Below are positions 7,181 to 63,474 of a DNA stretch of 64,000 nucleotides, piece after piece. This DNA comes from Chrysemys picta bellii (taxonomy: Eukaryota), in the NCBI RefSeq assembly GCF_011386835.1, contig NC_088810.1, positions 2,604,001-2,668,000 of the forward strand, read 5' to 3'. The notes under the pieces are model-generated. The model was not told where the DNA came from and did not search any database. It saw nothing but the letters and a program-made list of their open reading frames with translations. How positions within the stretch are numbered: position 1 is the stretch's first letter; each line of letters starts with the position of its first letter. A program made the translations under genes and the position numbers.

Positions 7181-8240
7181 TGCAGAGGGCGATATGATGC
7201 AGACTGAGGGACTCAAACCCATTTCCTAGCCAGGAAACCTACTGCATTAATAGCGATACACACAGTGTTTCTATCAGCGACCGTCTTCTCGAGGGCCCCA
7301 GGCTAGTCTGGCGGGAGGCTTGGGACGGAGGAGAACACGAGGATGCAGAAATTTGCGCACCCCTGGCTCTGCCCCCGCTGTGAAGATGCGTCCCTAGGGC
7401 TGCAGGGAAAGCAGCAGTAGCTCCCGCAGCAGACCGCACAGATGGCAGAGCTGCCAGGCCCAGATTTTCTTTTCCTGTAGGCTAGCGCCGCTGAGCTGAG
7501 ATGCCAGGACCTGTGCAGCCCCCCGGGAGCCCCCATCCCAGGCGGCACGGAGCCTGCTGCTGAGTGGTGAACAAGGAAGCAGAGCTAAAAGGATGAGAGA
7601 GGAAGCGAGGGATGCGGTTTGTTATCCCACTAGCCTTGGAGTCAGGAGACGCAGGGTGTGTTTCTGGCCTGCTTGGGGTCTCGCTCTGTGCCTCCATTTC
7701 CCCTCCCACCTTTTGTCTGTTTGTAAACTCTTAGGGACAGGGACTGTCTCCGGCTGTGTCTGGGCAGCACCTGGCATGTCGGGGCCCTGATCTCAGCTGG
7801 GGTCTCTAGTAAGTGTTGCTGTAATATAACTAGATAACAGGAAAAGAAACAATATAAGAAAGAAAGAACTATGGGCAGGAAAGTAGAACAGGGCCAGCTG
7901 CCTGGGCTGGGAATACACGAAAGGACTCAGACTGTGAGCCAGACTTTCCCACACACCTACATTCAATCATTTCACTATTCATCTGTTGACCCGGATTTAT
8001 GATGCTGGTTCTTCCAATCTAAGCCCGTCTGGTGTGACAACCTCAGCCCAGTTCCCGTGTCAAGTGGAAGCTGGCGGAGTTACGCTCTGGAGGATTACAT
8101 CAGGGGAGCTTCAAAAGGAAGGACCAGAACAGGGACAAGAACAGCAGAATAAGCACATGGTGCTCGTGAAGCGTGTGCCTTGAACATTTGGATGCCGGTC
8201 CTGGAAATCCTTCCTCATTTGAGTCGTCTCGTTAGCTTCG

Positions 8241-9452
8241 TTAGCTTTCCTTGTTGTCATATGGATTTAGCTTCTGTAGGATTCTTTGGGCATCTTCAGT
8301 AGCACGGCTGAGAAAGGTTTTCAGCAGGATATACTTGGTAGCCAATGAAATTCCAAAAGCAACCAAGAGTCCTACCCCTACAACTCCTCCAGACACCATG
8401 AATCCTAGCACCCGTAAAGGCCTCAGAAATAAATCTGCTACTATCAATATGCCACACCCAACCGAGGACAGGAGCTGCAAGACCACGTTAATGCTAATTT
8501 CCTTGGCCAGCAGGGGCTTCATAATGGCCTTCAGCTCTTCCGCTGGTTTGCCAAACTGCCTCGCGAGAGCCATGAAGGAGACATCATCGAGGCCAAAGAC
8601 CTGGCAATAATATCTCATGCATGTCAGCAGGATGGTTACGTCAATAATGGTGGAGACACCGGGTATGTGAATAACCGTGAGAAGAGAGGACGCAAGAGCT
8701 ATTTTCCAGATCTGCTTCTGCAGGGCTTCCTTTTTCTTTTGCAAGATTTGCAGAGAGGAGTTGGGCAGGGCCAGTATCAAAGCCCTTTTCTTGTCGCCCG
8801 GGAGCGCTTTCTCCATGCTCGCTCTCAGGAGGGGAAAATCGTACTTCTCTAATTGAAATGTACAGAGGAGGAAAACCTCAGGATTGATCATCCCTCCCAC
8901 TTCCAGGCATCTGATGCAGTGGTTACGGATGTTGTGCAGTATTTCCTCCTCATCATGGGTGGAGGGCCGGCTATGTCTGTCAGAATCCAAATCTGCCTCC
9001 ACCTTGGAGCGCACAAAGTAACACATCTTCCCTGCCTTCCGGATCTCCTGGGCGAGCTCAACATGCTTAGGTGTGAATCCCTCTGAACACATGATGATGA
9101 CAAAGTCATAGAGGACAAATTTCACCTGCTGGAGATATGCCTCTGGCTGAACATCTTCTGTCCCACTTATCGGCAGTCTCCAGAAAGTCACACTCGGGTG
9201 TTTGGGATGCTGATAAGCTGTTGGCTTCATCATAATTTCTTCCTCCTCAACTGGGGCAGCACCTTCGTCTTCATCACATAGCCCCCGCATGGCGTTAATG
9301 AAGGACGATTTCCCACAGCCTCGCTCTCCCATAATGGCGATATTTAACCTGGTGTATTCCAAAGCCCACTTCTGCATTATAGAAATCATTGTAGGTACTA
9401 ATTGAAATCCAGGAGCAGCCCTTGGTTCTCCCATGTCTTTGGCAGTCTGCCC
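8241..9452 (-). CDS. Terminal coding exon: full-length IRG (IIGP/p47) fold with degenerate GTPase motifs; unit 1
   Basis: 404-codon exon behind acceptor TTTTCAG|GGG (phase 0), internal ATG at 9434. G1 is GERGCGKS, switch I PVEEEEIMM, G3 WRLPISG, G4 SKVEAD. The C-terminal helical region aligns with the + strand IRGs. Confidence 0.92.
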   Translation of the reverse strand, partial: GQTAKDMGEPRAAPGFQLVPTMISIMQKWALEYTRLNIAIMGERGCGKSSFINAMRGLCDEDEGAAPVEEEEIMMKPTAYQHPKHPSVTFWRLPISGTEDVQPEAYLQQVKFVLYDFVIIMCSEGFTPKHVELAQEIRKAGKMCYFVRSKVEADLDSDRHSRPSTHDEEEILHNIRNHCIRCLEVGGMINPEVFLLCTFQLEKYDFPLLRASMEKALPGDKKRALILALPNSSLQILQKKKEALQKQIWKIALASSLLTVIHIPGVSTIIDVTILLTCMRYYCQVFGLDDVSFMALARQFGKPAEELKAIMKPLLAKEISINVVLQLLSSVGCGILIVADLFLRPLRVLGFMVSGGVVGVGLLVAFGISLATKYILLKTFLSRATEDAQRILQKLNPYDNKES

Positions 9453-11262
9453 CTGAAAACACAAAAACCCAGACCAAATATTGATCGTGTATTCTCAAGG
9501 GCAACATTTATAATGTAATCAGCTCACAGAAGAATCACAGAAGGCTCAAAGTGAATTTGCAACAATCTGCAGTTAAATTGAAGAAATTGCTGGTAGGAAG
9601 GAGACTGAGGACATCTTGTCCTTCTTCCCCCACCCCCATAGATGTCAGACCGTCAAAGATCCCTCACCAGGACCCGTGAGAAGTGGTAACACTACCATAA
9701 AGGCATGTGTGCAGCCCCCTTTCTGCAAGGAAGGTGTGAGATGCATTTGCAGAGGATCCTTTCTGAGCGAGCATCCCAGACGCACAACTGGAATCTGAAA
9801 ATCTCTGCCTGTTTTGGGGACCCAGGGCAATTTTGGAGAAGACATTCCAAAGTTACATCTTCACAACTTTCAAATAGCGGGAGCAATTGTCTTCAGAATT
9901 GGCTTGATCTTTAGAGCACCACAAGATCTACCAAACAAGTTAGGTTTGATATTTCTGGCTTCAGTAAGTGGGAGTTAAGTCTGGGCAGAAACTTTCTGAG
10001 TCAAGTGTCTGTGAGCTGGTTACACAGTTTGCAAAATCAGTTTACAGAGCAGTTTGCAAGTGCAGTAGGAAAATTCTGCCCCTCTTTGTGAGCTGTGGCA
10101 CCTGTTGCTGAGAACGTTCAGGGCCAGATCTTCAACTCCTGTTCTGGTTGGAAATCTGCCCTAATAAGGTAGCCAATAGTGGGGAAGTGGGCTGTCTTCT
10201 GGTATGAGGGTCATGTAACGCTGGGCTAACTGGCTCTATGCCCCTCACGTCTGCATAGTGCTCTGGGAAGAGGTATTCTGGAGGTTAGAAGAGGTTGGGG
10301 ACTCATGCTGAACCTCAGCTGCTGGAGCTGTCCCTATGGGACTGCTGCAGATGGCATAATTTAGAGTAACTGTGAGCTTGACTACATATGACAATCAATC
10401 CAGAATAAAGGAGAATGTGAATTTAAAGCAGACTAGCTAGTCTGGATTAACTCCCTACATGAATGCTTTGGAAGTGGATTAAGCTAGCTCCAGATAAAGC
10501 ATTCTTTCTAGGAATAAGAGCATCCACACATGGAGTTAATCAGGAACGGTTAATCAGGAATCATTCCCTGTGTAGTGGCAGGTCTAAACTACAGGGGAAA
10601 GTCGATCTAAGCTACACGATTTGAGTTAGGTTAGTAGCGTAACTCAAATTAATGTGTCTTAGATCTACTTACCACGGGGTCCACTCTCCCGTCGACTCCC
10701 CTTACTCATTTCGTTCTGGTGGAGTACCAGAGTCAACGGGAGAGTGATCGGCAGTTGATTTAACGGGTCTTCACTAGACCCAATAAATCGAAGCCCGGTG
10801 GATCGATTGTCACAGCATCGATCCACCCTGTAGTGTAGACCTGCTCTAGGCAAGCCCTTAATCCACTTTGGACAAAAGAAAAAGGCACTCTCATTCTGGA
10901 ATAGGAATATTCCCTTATGGAGTTATTATGGAATCGTTATTCTGCTTTAAATTCACACATTTACCTTATTCCGGATTAACTTTCATGTGTAAACAAACCT
11001 TAAATAAAGCAAAGGTGAAGTCTCTGCGCCAAGAGGCTTTGAGATGTGACAAAAGAAAGAAAACACGACAGTTTTCAAAACCGCAATCCTGATCTCTTTT
11101 CCCTTTCCACGTTTGCCTGACAAGGGCATCATTTCAAACGGGCAGCAGGGCCTTGAGAAATCCAAAGAGAAAGACCTAGTGACCCAGCCTCCTCCCCTCA
11201 AATCTAATGACCTCAGACACATGTGCAAACAAAGAAGGGAAGCGAAATGTCCGGAGCCGTAC

Positions 11263-11546
11263 CGGGGAGGAATGCGCAGGTGGACTGTGGGTGGGATTGG
11301 CCACTCCTGGCTCCATAGAGGTTGACGAGGATGCCCGGAGCAGATGTTTGTTCTCCTCTTCGTCTTTTTTATGGTCGGACACAGTCTGCTGGGACTCACT
11401 TCGAGGTGACTTTTTGTTCAGCCACAGTTTCCACAAGGAAGGATAATACATTCGAAGGAAAGCGAATGCTAATATCACCAGTAACACTCCCAGACTAATC
11501 CACCACAGACTGCACCATGTTGATGGGCTCTGGAGAAGCTCAGCAT
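11263..11546 (-). CDS. Transmembrane/juxtamembrane exon, unit 1
   Basis: Acceptor TTTTCCAG|AT (phase 1); encodes WCSLWWISLGVLLVILAFAFLR. Candidate donors are CCG|GTACGG (11263, phase 0) and CGAA|GTGAGT (11400, phase 1); unspliced read-through stops at 11176. Confidence 0.75.
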
Positions 11547-11901
11547 CTGGAAAACACAAAATAAACCCAACGGGACGCAGCATGAGAGATGGGATATTCC
11601 CCTGGGGCACGTGGGGAAGGGGTTAGAAATGTCCCACAGACTCCAGCCCGATGGCTCTCAGCATTTCCGTAGCGTGGATCGCAGCTTCCAAGAAAGAGGG
11701 TGTCATGGACACCCTCCCTTCCACAGGCCCCACTCCCCTTCCCATTTGACATCACCAAACCTCACCTCCCACTTCCTGGTTATCGCCTAGACCCCCCGCT
11801 CCCCTGCACAGAGCTCCACTCCCTGCCGCGTGGAGCAGTTTCTAGCAGCCCAGCTGCCCAGACCCTGGGACTTGTGCGGTGCCCTGTGAGAGGAGCCCTA
11901 C

Positions 11902-12252
11902 CCTTCTCCACGGCCACTCTCATCCGCATGGAAAACCTGCCCAGTTGGGGCTTGACGTGGCAGGTGTAGACCCCGTCGTCCGCCAGCTGGACGTTCTTGA
12001 GTCTCAGGGACGCGTTTCCCTCGCAGAATCTCTCCGGATACAGCTGGGTCCGGCCCCGGTAAGCCTCATCCTGTGTTTCCAGTGGGTCCAGCTCAGAGCA
12101 GTAGCTGTGAACCAGGAGATGTGGTCCCTCCTCTTCTTCCTTCTTCCAGGTGATGTTCAGTGGCTGGTGGTTTAACTTGGGTTGGAAGGAGCAATTCAGG
12201 ATGACGTCCTTCCCTGGCTGAACGATGATGGGCCTTTCCGTTTCACTGTCAC
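11902..12252 (-). CDS. IgV exon 2 (B7/butyrophilin-type V-set), unit 1
   Basis: 351 nt, phase 1-1 (CTTTCAG|GT ... AAGG|GTAGGG). Has C...W...YRGRTQL..GNASLRL..DDGVYTC V-set motifs. Confidence 0.92.
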
Positions 12253-13198
12253 CTGAAAGGGAAACAAACATCCAGACAGGAGAGGGGATTAGGGCCCGAG
12301 CCTGGGACGCCAGAGTCCTGACTTAATTCCCTGCTCGACCACAAAACCCCTGGGTGAACTTGGACAAGTCACTACATCGCCCCATACCTCAGTTTCCCCA
12401 TTTGTACAGTGTCAGTAACAGCCCTGTCCTACCAAACGGGCCCTGTGAGGAGAAGTACATTAAACTTTGAGAAACGCCTGGATCCTATGGAAATGGAAGA
12501 GTGATAACTGCCTGCAATCAAATCCTCATTTTCCCCCAAAATTTTTTCACCCGTTTTTTCTGAAATGTAGAAGTTACGTACACAGAACACATCGGTGGGG
12601 GTTGGACTGAACTGGCTCATGGCCCCTTAGACTTTCCCTGGTGCCAGCCTTGTTCAGCTCCAGAATCTAAGAGCTCATTTTAAGAAAATGTCACGCTCCA
12701 GCCTTTATGGTTGTGAAACTTATCCAAAAGAAGAGGTGGCATGATTACCGTGTATAAGGATTTTCACAGGGAGAAAATACCAGGTACTAATGGGCTCCTT
12801 AAGCTAGCAGAGACAAGCAGACCACGAACCAATGGCTGCCGGTATCTGCCGAGAGCCTGAAACAATCTCTTTGAGATGCAGGAGCTGCACTGAGCGTTAC
12901 CCATTTCTCCCCACCACACAAAATCTGCATGGAAAATCATACGGCTACATGGCCTTTTAAGTCGCACTGGGTATGAAAGTGCGGGTCTGCAGGGGAGTTC
13001 TCCTTCCCTTGCCTGGAAGGTAACAGGTAGTACAGAAAGCAGACAAAGTCAAGGCCAGACGAGTGTGGTGTTTTTGGTGGATACACTGTGGCTTTGCAAT
13101 GAGGCACCCATCTGCCCTGCTGGGTGATCACATGGTACACCAGGCCTGGAGTGATTGTCGCGGATGCTATGACCGGGGTACAGGAAGAGGAACCGTAC

Positions 13199-13552
13199 TT
13201 AGCACTATAAGTGAAATCTTCTGGGACCAGCTTCCCAGCTCACAGGTGACGTTGCAGAGGTAGGATCCCTCATCCTGGAGGCGAACGTCGCTGAGTCTCA
13301 GGGATGCATTTCCCTGGGGGAATTTCTGTGGATATAGCTGTGTTCGGCCCCTGTAAGCCTCTTCCTGTCCCTCCAGCCAGTTCATCTTCAGATAGAATCT
13401 GTGAACCAGGAGACCCTGGCCCTGGGCTCCTTCCTTTGTCCAGGTGATGCTCAGTCGATGGAAGCTTATCTTAAATTTGGACGGGAAGATGCAGGTCAGG
13501 GTGACGTCTTTCCCATACTGAGCTGTGATGGCTGTCTCCTCTCCAGCAATGC
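13199..13552 (-). CDS. IgV exon 1 (B7/butyrophilin-type V-set), unit 1
   Basis: 354 nt, phase 1-1 (CCTTTAAG|GC ... CTAA|GTACGG). Translates IAGEETAITAQYGKDVTLTC...ITW...YRGRTQL...DEGSYLC. Confidence 0.92.
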
Positions 13553-14356
13553 CTTAAAGGAAAGCGAAGATCAACATCAGAGTCTTTCATCCTCCAACCT
13601 CCACCATGACCCCCAAATCTTATTCAGAGTCACTGGTCCCCAGGAGAGAGCCCCCCAGCCTGTAAGTTGGGCCAACATACTTTGAATCCTAAGGAGGGAG
13701 CAAAGAAGTGTTAAACTGCTACCTTACTAGTTGGCCACCATCCTAGTTTTACAGCTTTCTGAAGGCCAGATCTTGTATGTCCACCAAACCTCGTCTTTTG
13801 GGGGGTGTAAAGCTAGTTAGAGGAATGCTTTTGGAACAATTTATTGGCTAATGAATAAACAGAGAAAAAATAAATGAAAAGGTGGCATGTTCCAAACTGA
13901 TTAAAGGATGTACTTTTTCGTGGAACAGTGAGCTTGTGGAACTCCCTGCCACATGATGTCATTGAGCCCAGGAGCTTGACAAGATCTAAACAGGGATTGG
14001 GTGGTTAGCTGGATAACAGGGAAAGCCAGAGTTAGAGTAGTTAATGCTAACATACATTTTGGAAGTGAGACTGAACCTCACGCTTAAACCAATCTCGAGT
14101 TATAAAAGATTAGCATGAGACCTCACATGTCGGGCAGACCATCCACAGCTATGGAGATATATATATACTGTGTATATAAGTTTTAAACAAACAGTTCAAT
14201 ACTGTACACAGCAATGAGGATTGTGAAGCTTGGTTGAGGTGGAGGAGTCAGAGGGTGGGATATTTCCCAGGGAGCCTTACTGCTAAATGATGAACTAGCA
14301 CTCGGCTGAGCCCTCAAGGGTTAACACATTGTTATTAATGTAGCCTCACACTCTAC

Positions 14357-14871: not shown

Positions 14872-16048
14872 TTTACGTACGCTGACCCCACTCTAAGTAC
14901 ATTGCCTTTTTAAGTAGATCAGCAAGTTGAGACAGCAGCTGCTGCCAGCATGCTCCCTCCGTCCTGAGCCCCGTCGTGCCCCCCACTGCTCCGTGTAGAT
15001 GGGGTACAGGAGTGGGGGGCAGGAGCGGGGGGAGAGGGACACCCTGACATCAGCCCTCCTCTTCCCCCCCGCCCCGCACAGCAAGCAGGAGGCTCCGGGG
15101 AGCAGCTCCAAGGCAGAGGGCAGGAGCAGCACATGGCAGTGGGGGGAGGGACACCTGAACTGCCGGCAGTCGATAGCCTGCTGGGCAGCTGCCGCACAGG
15201 GAACTCAGGGGAGCTGATAGGGGGGGCTGCTGGTCCACCCTGGCTCCAAGCCCCCCCCCCGCCCCCCCAGCTCCAGCAGGCTGCTCTTAAAGCAGGCGGC
15301 TGCCAAAGGACGTTAGAAGGGAGCACTGCACAACTTTAAACGAGCCTGTTCCCTAATTGATCAGCGACGTAACCACGAAACATCGTTAACCGGGACGCCG
15401 TTCAGTGAGGGGTTACTGTAATAACGCACAGCACTGAGCCCAATGGGGCCTTGGCCAGGACTGGGGTTCTTGTGTGTTACCGTGATACACCTAATAAACA
15501 GCAATCAGAATGGACAGCACCGAGCAAAGTGGGGGCCTGGGTTGTGACGGGGCTCCGGGGCACTGAAGTCGTTATCACCAAAGGCGAGCAGAGCTGGAAT
15601 ACTTACAGCAGAGAGTCCACAGCACAATCGAGTGAAGTGAGCAAACGAGACTGACTCTCATCATGGTGCGGAGCAGCCTGCGTCTGCAAGCGAAGGCGGG
15701 ACGGTCTCTGAAGGGCTGGCTCCTGCCCCAGGCGAGCCGCTGAACGTCAGGAATGAAGGCACCGGGCGCGATTCTCCTCTCGCTCACCCCAGTAGCGCTC
15801 AGGTGTAACGCCGGGCTGGTTCCGATCTCTCATCTCCTATGTCATTTAATAGCCAAGAAAGCAAAGCGATTGCAGACGTATTTGGCAGGGTGCTGTGGAA
15901 ATGCTTTTAACAAATGCAGACCTGGTTTCTCACTAATGCTCACACCTCTTTTGCTGGGTGTAAATTACATTCAATGCAATTCCGTAGCAGGAATCCAATT
16001 CTCTGACATCCCAGGGGAAGCCGAAATGAAGCCCCAGCCCCTCTAGAG

Positions 16049-16928: not shown

Positions 16929-16941
16929 GGAAAGTGAAAGC
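16929..16941 (-). promoter_or_regulatory. ISRE/IRF element, unit 1 promoter
   Basis: GGAAAGTGAAAGC (+) = GCTTTCACTTTCC (-), matching the GAAANNGAAA consensus. Confidence 0.7.
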
Positions 16942-22162: not shown

Positions 22163-22857
22163 TCAGCCAGCCAAACGACTCCCCAATTCTTGCTGTAATA
22201 TTTCCTCTAGGAGAGGAAAGTCGTGCCGGCCATATTCAAAGTTAGACAGGAGAAAGACCTGTGGGGAAGTCACCCCTTCTCTCTGCAAGTCTTTCACGCA
22301 AGTGTCTCTGATTCTCTGCAGAATTTGCTCTTCATTATAGGTAGAAGGCCGATTCCTCCGGGCAGCAAGCAAGTTCCTGTCGACCTTGGAGCGCACAAAA
22401 TAAACCTTCTTCCCTGCTCGCTGGATCTTCCGGGCCAGGCCAGTGTGGGTGGCTGTGAAGTGACGGGAGGAGAAGATGAGGAATACATCGTATTGGCTCA
22501 AACTGAAGAGATCGTGGTCCATGTCTGATTGACGTGTCATCAACCCGAACCCCGGCAGGTCCCATATGGTAACATTGGGTTGTTTGGGAAGCTGATAAGA
22601 AGTTGGTACCATTGTCGTTTCCACCACCCCGGTTTTAGCAGCACCTTCCTCTTCATCACCCAGGCCTCTAATGACATTGACAAAGGATGATTTCCCAGCA
22701 CCCGTCTGCCCCAGGAGAGCGACGCTTCGCATGGTGTTTTGTGATGACCCCCCATCCTCCTGCCATGCAGAATCTGCTTCAGAAAGGTCACTTGTGTCAG
22801 AAGTAAATGTGTAGCTCCAGGAATCGGCACTATCCCCGTCAGAGTCCAGCCTCTGGC
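22163..22857 (-). CDS. Terminal coding exon: acidic linker plus IRG G domain, C-terminal helical domain missing; unit 2
   Basis: Acceptor TTTTCCTTTTCCAAG|GC (phase 1); open for 41 codons before ATG 22732. G1 GQTGAGKS, switch I KTGVVETTM, G3 WDLPG, G4 SKVD. Stops after QELGSRLAG. Confidence 0.88.
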
Positions 22858-35329: not shown

Positions 35330-36610
35330 TCCACTGTCTACCTGCTCTCTCTGAGAAGTCTCCATTGTATCCAGTTCCTGGGAAAGTCCTTGGGAGTGTG
35401 AATTCCCTTTAATGGCCCATCAGCGCATCTGGCTCCTCCATTGCTGCACCTGAAAGGCTGGTTGTGGGTGTTCCCAATAAGGCAGCCCTCCCCAGAAACC
35501 TTCTGGAAAGGATTGCAGAGAACCTCCATGAAAGTTTCCTAGAGCTCTCCATGGAGGATTCCTGGGCCATCCCTGTGCACATAAACAGCCTTTTTGGGGG
35601 AGAACCCTCTGTGAAGCTAGGGCGGCCACCGGGACTCAGATACCCACTGCACCTCACTTTTCTTTCATATTAAACAAAATATAAGAGCACGTAACCCCTA
35701 CAGTTTCATTGGAATTGCATCCTCACCAGAGGTGCCTTCCCCGGCATCACACCTGACCACGATGCTGTTCTGGGAATGGCTGGACTGCTCCGGGGTTAAA
35801 AATAGCTTCTGGCTCTCAGGAAGAATGGATCCTCTGCTCGCCTGCCTTCCATTGTCCTCCTGCTGGTCTTTGTCCAAGTGTCCTCCTCGTTGTTGCCTGA
35901 GGTGGTCTGGGACTCCCGGGAGGTATCCGTGCTGCATTTTGGGGTAGTGGTGGGGTCGCCACTGAGAATCGCATGTAGCTCATTGTAGAACCAGAACGGC
36001 TGTTCACCTCCCTTGTCTTCTGGTACCTCTGCCTGCTGAAGTGCTTTGGTTTTCACGCAGCACTGCAGTGTGTCCTGGGTGTAGCCTGTCTCCCCCATGC
36101 CCCGCGTGATCTTTGCGTAGATGTCGACGTTTCTTCGGCTGGATGGGAGCTCTGCCTGCAGAGACTCTACTCCCCACGCAGCAATAAGATCCATCACCTG
36201 CTGTGTACTCCAGGCTGGGGCGCGTTTGGAGCGTTGAGTCACCATGCTCGGCGAGCTCGCCACGCTGATCACACAGGAAATGGGAATTCAAACGTTCCCA
36301 GGGCTTTAACCGGGAAGCGGCTGTTGCCCGTGTACTTGGCTGCCGTGCAGCGGAGCTGAAAACCATCTCCGCAGCGGTCACAGCGGAACATTGTGGGACA
36401 CCGCCAGGAGGCCAATTCAGTCGACGTACACAACACTGGGTCTACACTGCCTGTCTGTCGACCCATCAACGTCGAATTCATTACGTAATTAAGTCAACGC
36501 TACAGGTGGGTTAGGTTGGCCGAAGGGACCTCGTACTGTAGATGCAGACATTTTTAGGTTGACGTAAGGCAGCTTCCTTTGACCTAACTTTGCTGTGTAG
36601 ACCAGGCCTT
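35330..36610 (-). mobile_element. Harbinger/PIF-like element remnant with frameshifted Myb/SANT-like ORF (35698-36272)
   Basis: KRAPAWSTQQVMDLIAAWG...RRNVDIYAKI...QCCVKTKAL resembles a Myb/SANT-like domain; GTCTACAC/GTGTAGAC motifs are nearby. Confidence 0.7.
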
Positions 36611-41540: not shown

Positions 41541-42875
41541 ATGGATATGGATCTAGTCTCAGTGCTCAGGAAGGGTATGGAGTCTGTCTCAGCACGCATG
41601 AAGGGTATGGAGTCTGTCTCAGCACTCATGAAGGGTATGGAGTCCATCTCAGTGCTCATGAAAGCTCTGCATGTAAGGTTGGACCCAAAGGAATTCTTCA
41701 ATGGCTCCATAAAGGTGTTTGAGGAGTTCATGGATATTTTCAAAGACAAAGAACAGGCAGAAGTGGCTTCTATAGCGCAGGCGGAGCTGGATTTGTTCAA
41801 ATCCACCATGCTCAACATCGCAGTCACGGGGGAGACGGGTGCCGGGAAATCGTCCTTCATCAACGCCCTCCGGGGACTGACCGCTGAGGATGACGGGGCT
41901 GCCCCAACGGGGGTGACAGAAATGACGACGGAGCCGACTGTTTATCCCTATCCAAACCACCCCAACGTGAGGCTGTGGGACCTGCCCGGCATTGGTGCCC
42001 CAGATTTCCAGCCAACCACGTACCTGCAACAGGTGAACTTCGAATGCTATGACTTCTTCGTGATCATCGCTTCGGAGCGCTTCAAATGCAACCATATGGC
42101 CCTGGCCCAGGAGATCGAGAGAATGGGGAAGAGGTTCTATTTTGTGCTCTCCAAGGTGGATGAAGACTTGTGCAACGAAGAAAGGGATCACCCTAGAACA
42201 TTCAGTCAGGAGAGCGTCCTGGAGAGACTCAGGATGGACTGCAGGAAACACCTGCAAAAGGCAGGGATGAGCAACCCAGAGATTTTCCTTCTCTCCAGCT
42301 GTGAATTCACCAAGTATGATGCTCCTGGCCTGGTCAAGACTTTGAAGGATGATCTCCCAGGGCCGAAGAGACTTGCCTTTCTACTCAGTCTGCCACACCT
42401 GTCTGCCGAAATCATAGAGGAGAAGAAAGCTGCCCTGAAGAAGCTGATATGGTTAATCTCTCTCGCGTCGGCTTTAGTTAATATCATTCCTATCCCGCGG
42501 CTCTCTGTTGCTTGTGATATTAGCATCCTGCTAGGATTCATGATTGCCTTCTACAAGTACTTTGGCCTAGATGACGGCTCCTTGGCTAATCTGGCCAGGC
42601 AGAGTGGGAAACCAATAGCGGAGCTGAAGGCTGTTATCCTATCTCCTGAGGCAAAAGAAATAAACAGAGATTTTGTAATCAAACTGCTTCTAAAGGAGGA
42701 GAAGGTTTTGCCTAGATTAATTGCATATGTACCAGTGCTTGGTCCCATGTTAACTGTGGGAATCTCTTTTTCAACCACCTACTTCATGCTGTTGAGATTT
42801 CTCAGTGAAGTGGCTGAAGATGCCGAAAGGGTTCGGAAGACCGCTTTGAAGGAAGACAAGAAAAAGCGTAAATGA
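41541..42875 (+). CDS. IRGC-like: Immunity-related GTPase, GKS class, copy A (444 aa), apparently intact
   Basis: Single coding exon; G1 GETGAGKS, switch I PTGVTEMTT, G3 WDLPG, G4 SKVD; four N-terminal 10-aa repeats; C-terminal KEDKKKRK. Confidence 0.95.
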   Translation: MDMDLVSVLRKGMESVSARMKGMESVSALMKGMESISVLMKALHVRLDPKEFFNGSIKVFEEFMDIFKDKEQAEVASIAQAELDLFKSTMLNIAVTGETGAGKSSFINALRGLTAEDDGAAPTGVTEMTTEPTVYPYPNHPNVRLWDLPGIGAPDFQPTTYLQQVNFECYDFFVIIASERFKCNHMALAQEIERMGKRFYFVLSKVDEDLCNEERDHPRTFSQESVLERLRMDCRKHLQKAGMSNPEIFLLSSCEFTKYDAPGLVKTLKDDLPGPKRLAFLLSLPHLSAEIIEEKKAALKKLIWLISLASALVNIIPIPRLSVACDISILLGFMIAFYKYFGLDDGSLANLARQSGKPIAELKAVILSPEAKEINRDFVIKLLLKEEKVLPRLIAYVPVLGPMLTVGISFSTTYFMLLRFLSEVAEDAERVRKTALKEDKKKRK

Positions 42876-55314: not shown

Positions 55315-56595
55315 TCCACTGTCTACCTGCTCTCTCTGAGAAGTCTCCATTGTATCCAGTTCCTGGGAAAGTCCTTGGGAGTGTGAATTCCCTTTAATGG
55401 CCCATCAGCGCATCTGGCTCCTCCATTGCTGCACCTGAAAGGCTGGTTGTGGGTGTTCCCGATAAGGCAGCCCTCCCCAGAAACCTTCTGGAAAGGATTG
55501 CAGAGAACCTCCATGAAAGTTTCCTAGAGCTCTCCATGGAGGATTCCTGGGCCATCCCTGTGCACATAAACAGCCTTTTTGGGGGAGAACCCTCTGTGAA
55601 GCTAGGATGGCCACCGGGACTCAAATACCCACTGCACCTCACTTTTCTTTCATATTAAACAAAAAATATAAGAGCACGTAACCCCTACAGTTTCATTGGA
55701 ATTGCATCCTCACCAGAGGTGCCTTCCCCAGCATCACACCTGACCACGATGCTGTTCTGGGAATGGCTGGACTGCTCCGGGGTTAAAAATAGCTTCTGGC
55801 TCTCAGGAAGAATGGATCCCGTGCTCGCCTGCCTTCCATTCTCCTCCTGCTGCTCTTTGTCCACAGTGTCCTCCTCGTTGTTGCCTGAGGTGGCCTGGGA
55901 CTCCCGGGAGGTATCCGTGCTGCATTTTGGGGCAGTGGTGGGGTCGCCACTGAGAATCGCATGCAGCTCATTGTAGAACCAGAATGGCTGTTCGCTTCCC
56001 TTGTCTTCTGGTACCCCTGCCTGCTGAAGTGCTTTGGTTTTCACACGGCACTGCTGTGTGTCCCGGGGGTAGCCTGTCTCCCCCTTGCCCCATGTGATCT
56101 TTGCGTAGATGTCGACGTTTCTTCGGCTGGATGGGAGCTCTGCCTGCAGAGACTCTACTCCCCACGCAGCAATAAGATCCATCACCTGCTGTGTACTCCA
56201 GGCTGGGGCGCGTTTGGAGCGTTGAGTCACCATGCTCGGCGAGCTCGCCACGCTGATCACACAGGAAATGGGAATTCAAACGTTCCCAGGGCTTTAACCA
56301 GGAAGGGGCTGTTGCTTCTGTACCTGGCTGCCGTGCAGCGGAGCTGAAAACGATCTCCGTAGCGGTCACAGCGGAACATTGTGGGACACCGCCAGGAGGC
56401 CAATTCAGTCAACGTACACAACACTGGGTCTACACTGCCTGTCTGTCGACCCATCAACATCGAATTCATTATGTAATTAAGTCAACGCTACAGGTGGGTT
56501 AGGTTGGCGGAAGAGACCTCACAGTGTAGATGCATACATTATTAGATCAATGTAAGGCGGCTTCCTTTGACCTAACTTTGTCATGTAGACCAGGC
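55315..56595 (-). mobile_element. Harbinger/PIF-like remnant with open Myb/SANT-like ORF (55685-56260)
   Basis: Segmental paralog of 35330-36610; 191-aa ORF without the frameshift. Confidence 0.7.
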
Positions 56596-62175: not shown

Positions 62176-63474
62176 ATGGATATGGATCTAGTGTCCGTGC
62201 TCATGAAGGGTATGGAGTCCGTCTCAGTGCTCATGAAGAATATGGAGTTAATCTCAGCTCGCATGGAAGCTCTGGATCTAGGGTTGGACCCAAAGGAATT
62301 CTTCAATGGCTCCATAAAGTTGTTTGAGGAGTTCATGGATATTTTCAAAGACAAAGAACAGGCTGAAGTGGCTTCTATATCGCAGGCAGAGCTGGAGTCA
62401 TTCAAATCCACCATGCTCAATATCGCAGTCACGGGGGAGACGGGTGCCCGGAAATCGTCCTTCATCAACGCCCTCCGGGGACTGACCGCTGAGGATGACG
62501 GGGCTGCCCCAACGGGGGTGACAGAAATGACGACGAAGCCGACTGTTTATCCCTATCCAAACCACCCCAACGTGAGGCTGTGGGACCTGCCCGGCATTGG
62601 CGCCCCAGATTTTCAGCCAACCACGTACCTGCAGCAAGTGAACTTCAAACGCTATGACTTCTTCGTGATCATCGCTTCGGAGCGCTTCAAATGCAACCAC
62701 ACGGCCCTGGCCCGAGAGATCGAGAGGATGGGGAAGAGGTTCTATTTTGTGCGCTCCAAGGTGGATGAAGACTTGCGCAACGAAGAAAGGGATCACCCTA
62801 GAACATTCAGTCAGGAGAGCGTCCTGCAGCGACTCAGGATGGACTGCAGGAAACACCTGCAAAATGCAAGGATGTGCAACCCAGAGATTTTCCTTCTCTC
62901 CAGCTGTGAATTCACCAAGTATGATGCTCCTGGCCTTGTAAAGACTTTGCAGGATGATATCCAAGGTCTGCAGAGACTTGCCTTTCTGCTCAGTCTGCCA
63001 AACCTGTCTGCAGAAATCATAGAGGAGAAGAAAGCTGCCCTGAAGAAGCGGATATGGCTAATATCCCTCGCATCGGCTTTAGTCAATGTCATTCCTATCC
63101 CGCGGCTCTCTGTTGCTTGTGATATTAGCATCCTGCTAGGATCCATGATTGCCTTCTACAAGTACTTCGGTCTAGATGACATCTCCTTGCCTAATCTGGC
63201 CAGGCAGACTGGGAAACCGATAGCGGAGCTGAAGGCTGTTATCATATCTCCTGAGGCAAAAGAAATAAACAGAGATGTTGTAATCAAACTGCTGCTAAAG
63301 ACGGGTTTGCCTGGATTAACTGCAAATCTACCAGTGCTTGGTCACATATTAACTGCGGGAATCTCTTTTTTAACCACCTACTTCATGCTGTTGAGCTTTC
63401 TCAGTGAAGTGGCTGAAGATGCCGAAAGGGTTCGGAAGACCGCTTTGAAGGAAGACGGGAAAAAGCGTAAATGA
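62176..63474 (+). CDS. IRGC-like: Immunity-related GTPase copy C (432 aa) with P-loop Gly-to-Arg change
   Basis: G1 reads GETGARKS (CGG at 62449-62451 versus GGG in paralogs); three N-terminal repeats; 6-nt in-frame deletion near the C-terminus. Confidence 0.93.
   Translation: MDMDLVSVLMKGMESVSVLMKNMELISARMEALDLGLDPKEFFNGSIKLFEEFMDIFKDKEQAEVASISQAELESFKSTMLNIAVTGETGARKSSFINALRGLTAEDDGAAPTGVTEMTTKPTVYPYPNHPNVRLWDLPGIGAPDFQPTTYLQQVNFKRYDFFVIIASERFKCNHTALAREIERMGKRFYFVRSKVDEDLRNEERDHPRTFSQESVLQRLRMDCRKHLQNARMCNPEIFLLSSCEFTKYDAPGLVKTLQDDIQGLQRLAFLLSLPNLSAEIIEEKKAALKKRIWLISLASALVNVIPIPRLSVACDISILLGSMIAFYKYFGLDDISLPNLARQTGKPIAELKAVIISPEAKEINRDVVIKLLLKTGLPGLTANLPVLGHILTAGISFLTTYFMLLSFLSEVAEDAERVRKTALKEDGKKRK

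Follow-up and report, generated by a model that had tools for sequence, protein, structure and literature searches.

Is an IRG-type GTPase domain whose catalytic motifs have been altered a domain that turtles have kept, or what is left of a gene in decay? The question is raised by unit 1, a minus-strand gene in a stretch of 64,000 nucleotides from Chrysemys picta bellii (NCBI RefSeq assembly GCF_011386835.1, contig NC_088810.1, positions 2,604,001 to 2,668,000 of the forward strand) that was analyzed at its full length and is referred to here as the window. IRG proteins are soluble or lipid-anchored effectors that attack pathogen vacuoles, and their dead relatives (IRGQ) have long been suspected of being regulators and are poorly understood. 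An examination of the letters of the window without database searches (the sequence-only reading) had described unit 1 as a pseudo-GTPase and the adjoining unit 2 as its motif-intact counterpart. Our analysis makes it quite likely that unit 1 ends in an exon for a quasi-IRG (pseudo-GTPase) domain that is transcribed and kept by selection, and that this domain is the cytoplasmic tail of a type I membrane receptor. Having IRG homology and a modified nucleotide-binding site, and being expressed and under selection, the domain is a turtle-wide quasi-IRG of the IRGQ-like kind.

The altered G domain and the gene that carries it

The open reading frame (ORF) of unit 1 at 8241-9464 on the minus strand comprises 407 codons under the bacterial-start convention. 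It matched the Pfam model IIGP (PF05049) with an E-value of 8e-78 and a score of 262.6 bits (cut-off 24) over profile positions 30-374 of 375, and a phmmer comparison with Irga6 gave 1.5e-59, with the G domain aligned without gaps. The true start of the IRG exon is position 9452, directly past the acceptor ttttgtgttttcag, where a polypyrimidine tract and an AG stand ahead of 9452 on the minus strand. The ORF was aligned with the four IRG paralogues of the window and with 69 canonical IRGs ranging from fish to reptiles, and Irga6 numbering was assigned by using the known P-loop residues K82/S83 as the register. The following elements of the domain were located in these alignments.

9306..9329, minus strand: G1/P-loop GERGCGKS, intact, corresponding to Irga6 G76-S83
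9231..9251, minus strand: switch I VEEEEIM, canonical TGVxExT, corresponding to Irga6 T102-T108
9168..9179, minus strand: G3 RLPI, canonical DLPG (D126R, G129I), with the AGA codon at 9177-9179
8997..9008, minus strand: G4 SKVE, canonical SKVD (D186E)
8862..8864, minus strand: G5 with Cys for Ser (LLC, canonical LLS), confined to Chrysemys and Trachemys
8355..8387 (approximate), minus strand: 11-residue Gly/Val/Leu hydrophobic insertion near the C-terminus, in the quasi-IRG clade only

Mapped on Irga6, the changes are T102V, G103E, V104E, V105E, T108M, D126R, G129I, and D186E, with E106 kept. The kept GKS, the switch I VEEEEIM, the G3 RLPI with its AGA codon, and the G4 SKVE had all been read from the letters of the window, and each was recovered in the alignments with the paralogues, the canonical IRGs, and Irga6. 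Two changes go beyond that reading, namely R159G, by which a residue of the catalytic interface is also lost (E77 and E106 are retained), and the change from LLS to LLC in G5. In an alignment of 76 sequences, conservation is at least 90% in the columns of G103, T108, D126, G129, and D186, with the turtle orthologues as the exceptions, so the lesions are not chance drift at variable sites. When compared with a catalytically competent GKS-type IRG, the domain has the G1 sequence GxxxxGKS and fails in the switch I threonines, of which T108 is invariant among IRGs, in the G3 sequence DxxG, and in the G4 sequence [N/T/S]KxD.

A comparison of the predicted structure with Irga6, which had been proposed as a check, also agreed with membership in the family. 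An AlphaFold2 model built on the 76-sequence alignment (pLDDT 83.8, pTM 0.82) showed a complete G domain and helical domain, the full IRG fold, and the top structures found with Foldseek were Irga6, GM4951, Irgb6, and Irgb10 (TM 0.65-0.72; for Irga6, E about 1e-22 and TM about 0.7). A single N-terminal helix precedes beta1 in the model; the earlier N-terminal helices and the myristoylation site of Irga6 are absent, and a transmembrane segment and linker stand in their place. Owing to the hydrophobic insertion, the 19-residue Kyte-Doolittle maximum is 2.27, where the plain paralogues reach 1.7; the insertion is present in 11 of the 13 orthologous sequences described below. Trachemys has lost it; for Chelonia, the annotated model departs from the others at the insertion, and the exon itself reads it in frame. 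Its composition suggests that it may be an extra membrane-embedded segment, and the model is least confident there.

The remainder of the gene was worked out by examining the exons one by one, and the public full-length model P0122 was used alongside. The features of unit 1 are listed below.

8241..9452, minus strand: final coding exon of unit 1, carrying the quasi-IRG domain (403 codons and a stop codon at 8241-8243)
9453..11262, minus strand: intron, GT..AG on the minus strand, between the transmembrane/linker exon and the IRG exon (joint in 4/4 RNA runs)
11263..11546, minus strand: transmembrane and cytoplasmic linker exon (phase 1 start, phase 0 end; agrees with orthologous protein models)
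11902..12252, minus strand: membrane-proximal IgV exon (RNA joints 11546/11902 and 12250/13197-8; translation)
13198..13552, minus strand: membrane-distal IgV exon (RNA contigs and translation; lower boundary +/-2 bases)
15607..15664, minus strand: coding part of the signal-peptide exon, MMRVSLVCSLHSIVLWTLCC (the loose end of the RNA contigs at 13552 maps to 15607-15636; translation)

The RNA evidence consists of assembled contigs of four public runs from four studies. Among the contigs across 8100-14000, the joint from 9451/9452 to 11262/11263 and the joint from 11546 to 11902 were each present in all four runs, and the joint from 12250 to 13197/8 was present in two; all are canonical GT..AG joints of the minus strand. 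Since the introns are absent from these contigs, the contigs can only derive from RNA, and the IRG exon is therefore transcribed and spliced. Furthermore, two contigs match the window without a difference over 9024-9297, and the changed switch I and G3 are thereby present in the transcripts. The exon phases agree throughout (the Ig exons are in phase 1, and the IRG exon is entered in phase 0), and the frame that had been described as open for about 400 codons corresponds to the exon of 403 codons and its stop. The public full-length model comprises 752 residues and is identical over the IRG part. Unit 1 is laid out as signal peptide, IgV, IgV, transmembrane segment, linker, and IRG domain; it is a type I membrane protein, a B7-like receptor. 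In the databases, these turtle genes are named only "interferon-inducible GTPase 5-like" or "uncharacterized".

Orthologues in other turtles and selection on the frame

Orthologues of the domain were gathered by two word-based protein searches. Sequences with 68-94% identity were found in Trachemys, Emys, Mauremys (two genes), Pangshura, Gopherus, Chelonoidis, Chelydra, Chelonia, Carettochelys, and Emydura, as well as in a second Chrysemys gene, and the next-best matches past these orthologues were canonical IRGs with at most 49% identity. In a maximum-likelihood (ML) tree, 13 sequences from 11 turtle species, Pleurodira and Trionychia included, formed one clade with 100% bootstrap and a long stem, and the branching inside this clade tracks the turtle species tree. 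Chrysemys and Mauremys each have two of these genes, which suggests that the gene was duplicated inside Testudinoidea, at nodes with weak support.

Every member of the clade carries lesions in both switch I and G3. The position of T102 is V or L, that of T108 is M, V, or Q, that of D126 is R, and that of G129 is I, V, or L in 13/13 sequences, and R159 has been lost in 12/13. GxxxCGKS is retained in 11/13 (Trachemys and the older Chrysemys model have GKLS), [S/A]KVD in 12/13, and the G5 sequence LLS in 11/13. VEEEEIM is common to Chrysemys and Trachemys only; the ancestral turtle form is VGEEE[T/M]M, and G103E is found in Chrysemys and Trachemys, with E also in Carettochelys. The proposal that orthologues would keep the same substitutions thus holds for switch I and G3, and fails for SKVE, which occurs in Chrysemys alone. 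Judged from this distribution, D186E is a late Chrysemys-specific change. Because the switch I and G3 lesions are common to Pleurodira, Trionychia, and Durocryptodira, they have a single origin before the split of Pleurodira and Cryptodira. That split took place over 200 million years ago.

Several further observations concern copies and alleles of the gene. The second Chrysemys gene of the Ig-transmembrane-quasi-IRG type (LOC101936008, P0134) is 83% identical and lies outside the window, and Mauremys reevesii has two such genes (P0136, P0140). One lineage of the duplicated turtle quasi-IRG genes has a short deletion directly after RLPI. The exon at 8241-9452 exists in two Chrysemys versions, that of the window and that of the older-reference models P0001/P0123, with differences between them at 19-22 of the approximately 362 residues (5-6%). 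Roughly a dozen variant Chrysemys states are those of Trachemys (P0121), e.g., L18I, M22L, K28Q, Y33H, S49L, V118F, A254V, and G332A, and A254V (8692 G>A) was found in one RNA contig. The differing versions could reflect long-lived polymorphism, gene conversion, or copy-number variation.

Whether the frame has been kept by selection was examined at the orthologous loci of seven species. The acceptor is the same at all seven, and the frame, whose state in orthologues the sequence-only reading had proposed to check, is open at each of them for 384-414 codons; among the seven loci only the extreme C-terminal end differs, namely in Trachemys and the old draft of Chelonia. In a neutral simulation on a dS-scaled tree with a total length of 0.57 (substitutions only), seven open frames were obtained in 0/20,000 replicates, and the maximum was four of seven. 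Pairwise dN/dS values (NG86) lay between 0.43 and 0.85. With a single ratio estimated by ML, omega was 0.78 for the whole exon (p about 0.02-0.03 versus 1), 0.81 for the G domain (p=0.21), and 0.68 for the C-terminal half (p=0.03). One-ratio dN/dS was rejected as a decisive test, since a value of 0.78 looks near-neutral and the site-class and regional models show a mixture.

The site-class tests were run with our own GY94 implementation on seven taxa with naive posteriors, and their results are indicative. M1a was preferred to M0 (2dlnL 43, p=5e-11) and M2a to M1a (2dlnL 12, p=0.0025), with 64% of sites at an omega of 0.24 and about 31% at an omega of about 2. By region, exon residues 35-96, which take in beta1 and the P-loop as well as switch I and G3, had an omega of 0.36 (p=2e-4), and residues 216-325 (helical core) had an omega of 0.54 (p=0.0025). 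The values for residues 97-145 (1.08) and 146-215 (1.44), which form the rest of the G domain, and for residues 326-391 (1.43) of the C-terminal part were not significantly different from 1. Column conservation over the 13 sequences gave the same regional pattern. Constraint outside the motifs is patchy: it is seen in the helical core and not over residues 97-215 and 326-391, where omega is about 1 or above. The remodelled face of the nucleotide pocket is the best-conserved part of the domain, which argues for a retained or new function of this face and not for mere decay. The description of unit 1 as a pseudo-GTPase-like IRG and not a young pseudogene is supported by the lesions in 13 sequences, the seven open frames, the spliced RNA, and the omega of 0.36.

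Unit 2 and the other IRG genes of the window

The window contains five IRG reading frames, namely unit 1, unit 2, and three plain plus-strand IRGs at 41541, 48581, and 62176. Two further features bear on units 1 and 2.

22163..22732, minus strand: unit 2 G-domain ORF, 189 residues, with all G motifs intact; upstream neighbor of unit 1
16930..16940, no strand assigned: ISRE-like sequence GAAAGTGAAAG upstream of unit 1 (pattern scan of the window)

The G domain of unit 2 had been described as motif-intact, and this is the case in four species. It is more conserved than unit 1, with NG86 values of 0.29-0.59 for the informative pairs. In Chrysemys, Trachemys, Chelonia, and Chelydra, its exon is directly upstream of unit 1 and shares the strand of unit 1. 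The protein ends directly after the G domain (…QQELGSRLAG*), and because the stop is at the same place in the three species that could be checked (Chrysemys, Trachemys, and Chelonia), the truncation is conserved and is no assembly artefact. The view of units 1 and 2 as an active/dead pair, and the analogy with GMS/GKS regulation, have the adjacency of the two genes as their evidence.

The identical ISRE-like 11-mer GAAAGTGAAAG occurs four times in the window, at 16930, 30516, 33230, and 52905, upstream of both units and close to a further IRG, and a looser ISRE-like pattern gave 8 matches in the window against 1.17 expected. Among the plain IRGs, the copy at 62176-63474 (plus strand) has the P-loop GETGARKS, in which the second conserved Gly of GxxxxGKS is Arg, and is otherwise full length. 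The copy at 41541-42875 (plus strand), also otherwise full length, has FVLSKVD in place of the FVRSKVD of the other copies. Two near-identical minus-strand ORFs, 35796-36272 and 55685-56260, start with MISVASSPSMVTQRSKRAPAWSTQQVMDLIAAWG; these copies stand among the IRG genes and may be transposon-derived. Other turtle proteins combine IRG domains in different ways. The 'verrucotoxin subunit beta-like' proteins P0166 and P0167 (Mauremys mutica and Pangshura tecta, 971 aa) join IIGP (PF05049) to stonustoxin-type and fibronectin type III domains, and P0131-P0133 and P0137 (Pangshura, Mauremys, Gopherus, and Terrapene; 1225-1263 aa) apparently consist of three tandem IRG units.

Catalysis, nucleotide binding, and possible partners

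The consequences of the lesions can be gauged from mutants of mouse proteins. In Irga6, all T102/T108 mutants tested, neutral or acidic, had abolished hydrolysis and strongly inhibited GTP-dependent oligomerization, the affinities of the Thr-to-Ala mutants for GTP and GDP remained in the wild-type range, and transfected phosphomimetic mutants acted as partial dominant negatives, with less wild-type protein loaded on the vacuole (PMC3006384; PMC3042988). Mg2+ is coordinated by D126 (D125 in GM4951), and the GM4951 allele D125G has lost its function (PMC12749288). Oligomerization and hydrolysis require R159, and the contacts between IRGs, regulatory as well as activating, all pass through the catalytic interface (PMC3042988). 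By analogy with these mutants, the unit 1 domain is very probably unable to hydrolyze GTP. It may still bind nucleotide, given the conservation of G1, G4, and G5. The Chrysemys pocket shows additional erosion (G103E, D186E, Cys for Ser in G5, and S83L in one allele), which suggests that the binding of nucleotide may itself be dispensable. The sequence-only reading had also suggested that the acidic switch I may mimic phosphorylation, and this part of it did not find support. The acidic residues sit between and not at the two former threonine sites, which are V and M, and Thr-to-Ala disables Irga6 as fully as Thr-to-Asp does (PMC3006384), so the phospho-mimic switch was rejected in the form proposed.

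We propose the following course of events. On the stem lineage of the living turtles, the domain lost the G3 Asp and Gly, which serve Mg2+ coordination and gamma-phosphate sensing in mouse IRGs, along with R159 and both switch I threonines, on which hydrolysis and GTP-dependent oligomerization depend there. It kept the whole IRG fold, the P-loop, E77, and E106, and ancestrally G4 and G5. The tail of unit 1 would then be a non-hydrolyzing, membrane-anchored IRG module that possibly holds a nucleotide. Such a module would form no canonical GTP-driven oligomers. Through protein contacts made by its remodelled, conserved pocket face, it would scaffold or regulate IRGs that are still competent in catalysis, with the G-domain-only receptor of the adjoining unit 2 as the prime candidate partner.

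This proposal has precedents among known systems. The quasi-IRGs IRGQ/FKSG27 of mammals and irgq1-3 of zebrafish are p47-colinear IRG homologues with a modified nucleotide-binding site; IRGQs arose independently in separate vertebrate groups from local IRG genes and are polyphyletic, and quasi-IRGs that lie beside truncated live IRGs have been proposed to be regulatory heterodimer partners (PMC1297648). Like zebrafish irgq1, which is directly downstream of the truncated canonical irgg (PMC1297648), unit 1 is downstream of the truncated, motif-intact unit 2. Unlike mammalian IRGQ, the turtle domain has an intact G1 and ancestrally also had G4 and G5, is far less diverged (IIGP 8e-78, 44-48% identity to canonical IRGs of reptiles and fish), and forms a turtle-only clade in our tree, which includes no IRGQ sequence. 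In both protein searches its nearest relatives were canonical IRGs, and together with the polyphyly of IRGQs this suggests that the turtle quasi-IRG probably originated independently and is no orthologue of mammalian IRGQ. Mammalian IRGQ is an autophagy receptor that acts via LIR motifs (PMC13172515), and no conserved LIR-like motif was seen in the turtle domain. The turtle domain also differs from other quasi-IRGs in being the tail of an IgV-IgV-transmembrane receptor, neither soluble nor an IRG-IRG tandem.

With Irga6 the turtle domain shares the fold, and it is naturally changed at both threonines whose mutation kills Irga6 hydrolysis and oligomerization. It differs from Irga6 in also being without the G3 Asp, the G3 Gly, and R159, in having a transmembrane segment and linker instead of the N-terminal helices and myristoylation site, and in having the 11-residue hydrophobic insertion. 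The GMS regulatory IRGs (Irgm1-3) bind GKS proteins through the catalytic interface and hold them inactive (PMC3042988). Unit 1 resembles them in being a membrane-bound member of the IRG family with an altered catalytic interface. In Irgm1-3 the changes are GKS to GMS, E106R, R159Q, and D164H, whereas unit 1 keeps GKS and E106 and is changed at other residues, and no orthology is implied.

Outside the IRG family, butyrophilin and butyrophilin-like receptors have a B7-like ectodomain and a cytosolic B30.2 sensor domain, and adjacent genes form heteromers. Unit 1 is like them in its B7-like Ig ectodomain, transmembrane segment, and large folded cytosolic immune domain, and its neighboring paralogue could pair with it in the same manner; it is unlike them in that the cytosolic domain is an IRG fold and no B30.2.

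Several other explanations account for part of these data. The pocket could be empty, as in a class i pseudo-GTPase, so that the domain would be a purely structural adaptor that binds no nucleotide, and we regard this as a tentative alternative that is on the unlikely side. The Arg at the Mg2+ site and the four glutamates of switch I could shut the pocket without a ligand, Chrysemys tolerates D186E and the G5 change of Ser to Cys, and S83L is found in one Chrysemys allele and in Trachemys. The orthologues are also without precomputed matches to general P-loop GTPase Pfam families (e.g., PF01926), which the paralogues have. The presence of GxxxCGKS and [S/A]KVD in nearly all orthologues, together with an omega of 0.36 around the P-loop, is hard to explain if nothing is bound.

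The domain might instead be a decoy or sensor for pathogen effectors aimed at IRG switch regions and have no part in regulating host IRGs. Such a role has a parallel in mouse Irgb2-b1, which captures Toxoplasma ROP5 as a decoy. It would fit with the preference for M2a over M1a and the sites with an omega of about 2, with the 5-6% of residues that differ between the two Chrysemys alleles, many of whose states are common to Trachemys, and with the fact that 4/6 variants listed in the RNA contigs are amino acid changes. We nevertheless consider it improbable, since the former kinase-target threonines are gone, the switch segment is conserved and not diversifying, the signal of positive selection is moderate given seven taxa and naive posteriors, and no turtle pathogen is known to target IRGs.

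A more elaborate form of partnership can be drawn, to which we give a similarly low probability. Units 1 and 2 might constitute a heteromeric B7-like receptor with a split IRG machine, in which unit 2 would supply a live G domain without a helical domain and unit 1 a hydrolysis-dead, nucleotide-presenting G domain with the helical domain and the extra hydrophobic segment. Ig engagement would thereby be coupled to IRG-type GTP-dependent membrane assembly, or the state of cytosolic IRGs would be signaled outwards, and this arrangement would have been kept since the origin of crown turtles. If true, the split receptor would represent butyrophilin-like logic on an IRG fold.

It is very unlikely that unit 1 encodes a working GTPase with non-canonical catalytic residues, for example one in which the G3 Arg replaces Mg2+ and E106 acts with the acidic switch. 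In favor of such an enzyme, purifying selection acts on the pocket segment, conservation extends to the P-loop, E77, E106, K184, and, except in Chrysemys, D186, and neither T102 nor T108 touches Mg2+ in Irga6 crystals (PMC3006384). These points are met by the loss of hydrolysis in all of the tested Irga6 T102/T108 mutants, by the loss of function of GM4951 D125G, by the replacement of the gamma-phosphate-sensing G3 Gly by a branched residue in 13/13 sequences, and by the loss in 12/13 of R159, which is required for oligomerization-activated hydrolysis. A young or decaying pseudogene, i.e., an IRG copy that lost its function recently and is still open by chance, would agree with the mean dN/dS of 0.78 and the values of about 1 or above over residues 97-215 and 326-391, the further motif losses in Chrysemys, and the differing C-terminal tails of Trachemys and the old Chelonia draft, and was ruled out with next to no probability left to it, as the shared lesions are as old as crown turtles, all seven frames are open as opposed to 0/20,000 under neutrality, spliced mRNA comes from four studies, and omega is 0.36 over the motif segment with M1a strongly preferred to M0.

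A selectively maintained quasi-IRG as a receptor tail is the reading that we prefer, and a number of points weigh against it. The mean dN/dS of 0.78 is marginally below 1 (p=0.02-0.03), and that of the G domain is not significantly so (p=0.21). The site-class tests come from seven taxa, our own GY94 code, and naive posteriors, and the seven-species codon set may mix the two Testudinoidea paralogues. The loss of hydrolysis is deduced from mutants of mouse Irga6 and GM4951, and conservation of the P-loop and G4 could point to a surviving function that depends on nucleotide. Unit 2 is a candidate partner; its expected exon would lie beyond the 10-kb flanks, by about 270 bp in Gopherus and by more in Chelonoidis, and the Emydura flank is not alignable for unit 2 adjacency.

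Our literature searches on turtle and reptile IRGs returned no paper describing a quasi-IRG as the tail of a B7-like IgV-IgV-transmembrane receptor. In unit 1, a domain that is very probably catalytically dead serves as the tail of an Ig-superfamily receptor and has been kept since before the living turtles diverged, with a live, truncated gene adjoining it. The turtle domain would thus offer a natural, evolutionarily validated system for what quasi-IRGs do, and may bear on whether G-domain contacts of IRGs can serve signaling in place of membrane attack and on which residues are required for contact as opposed to catalysis.

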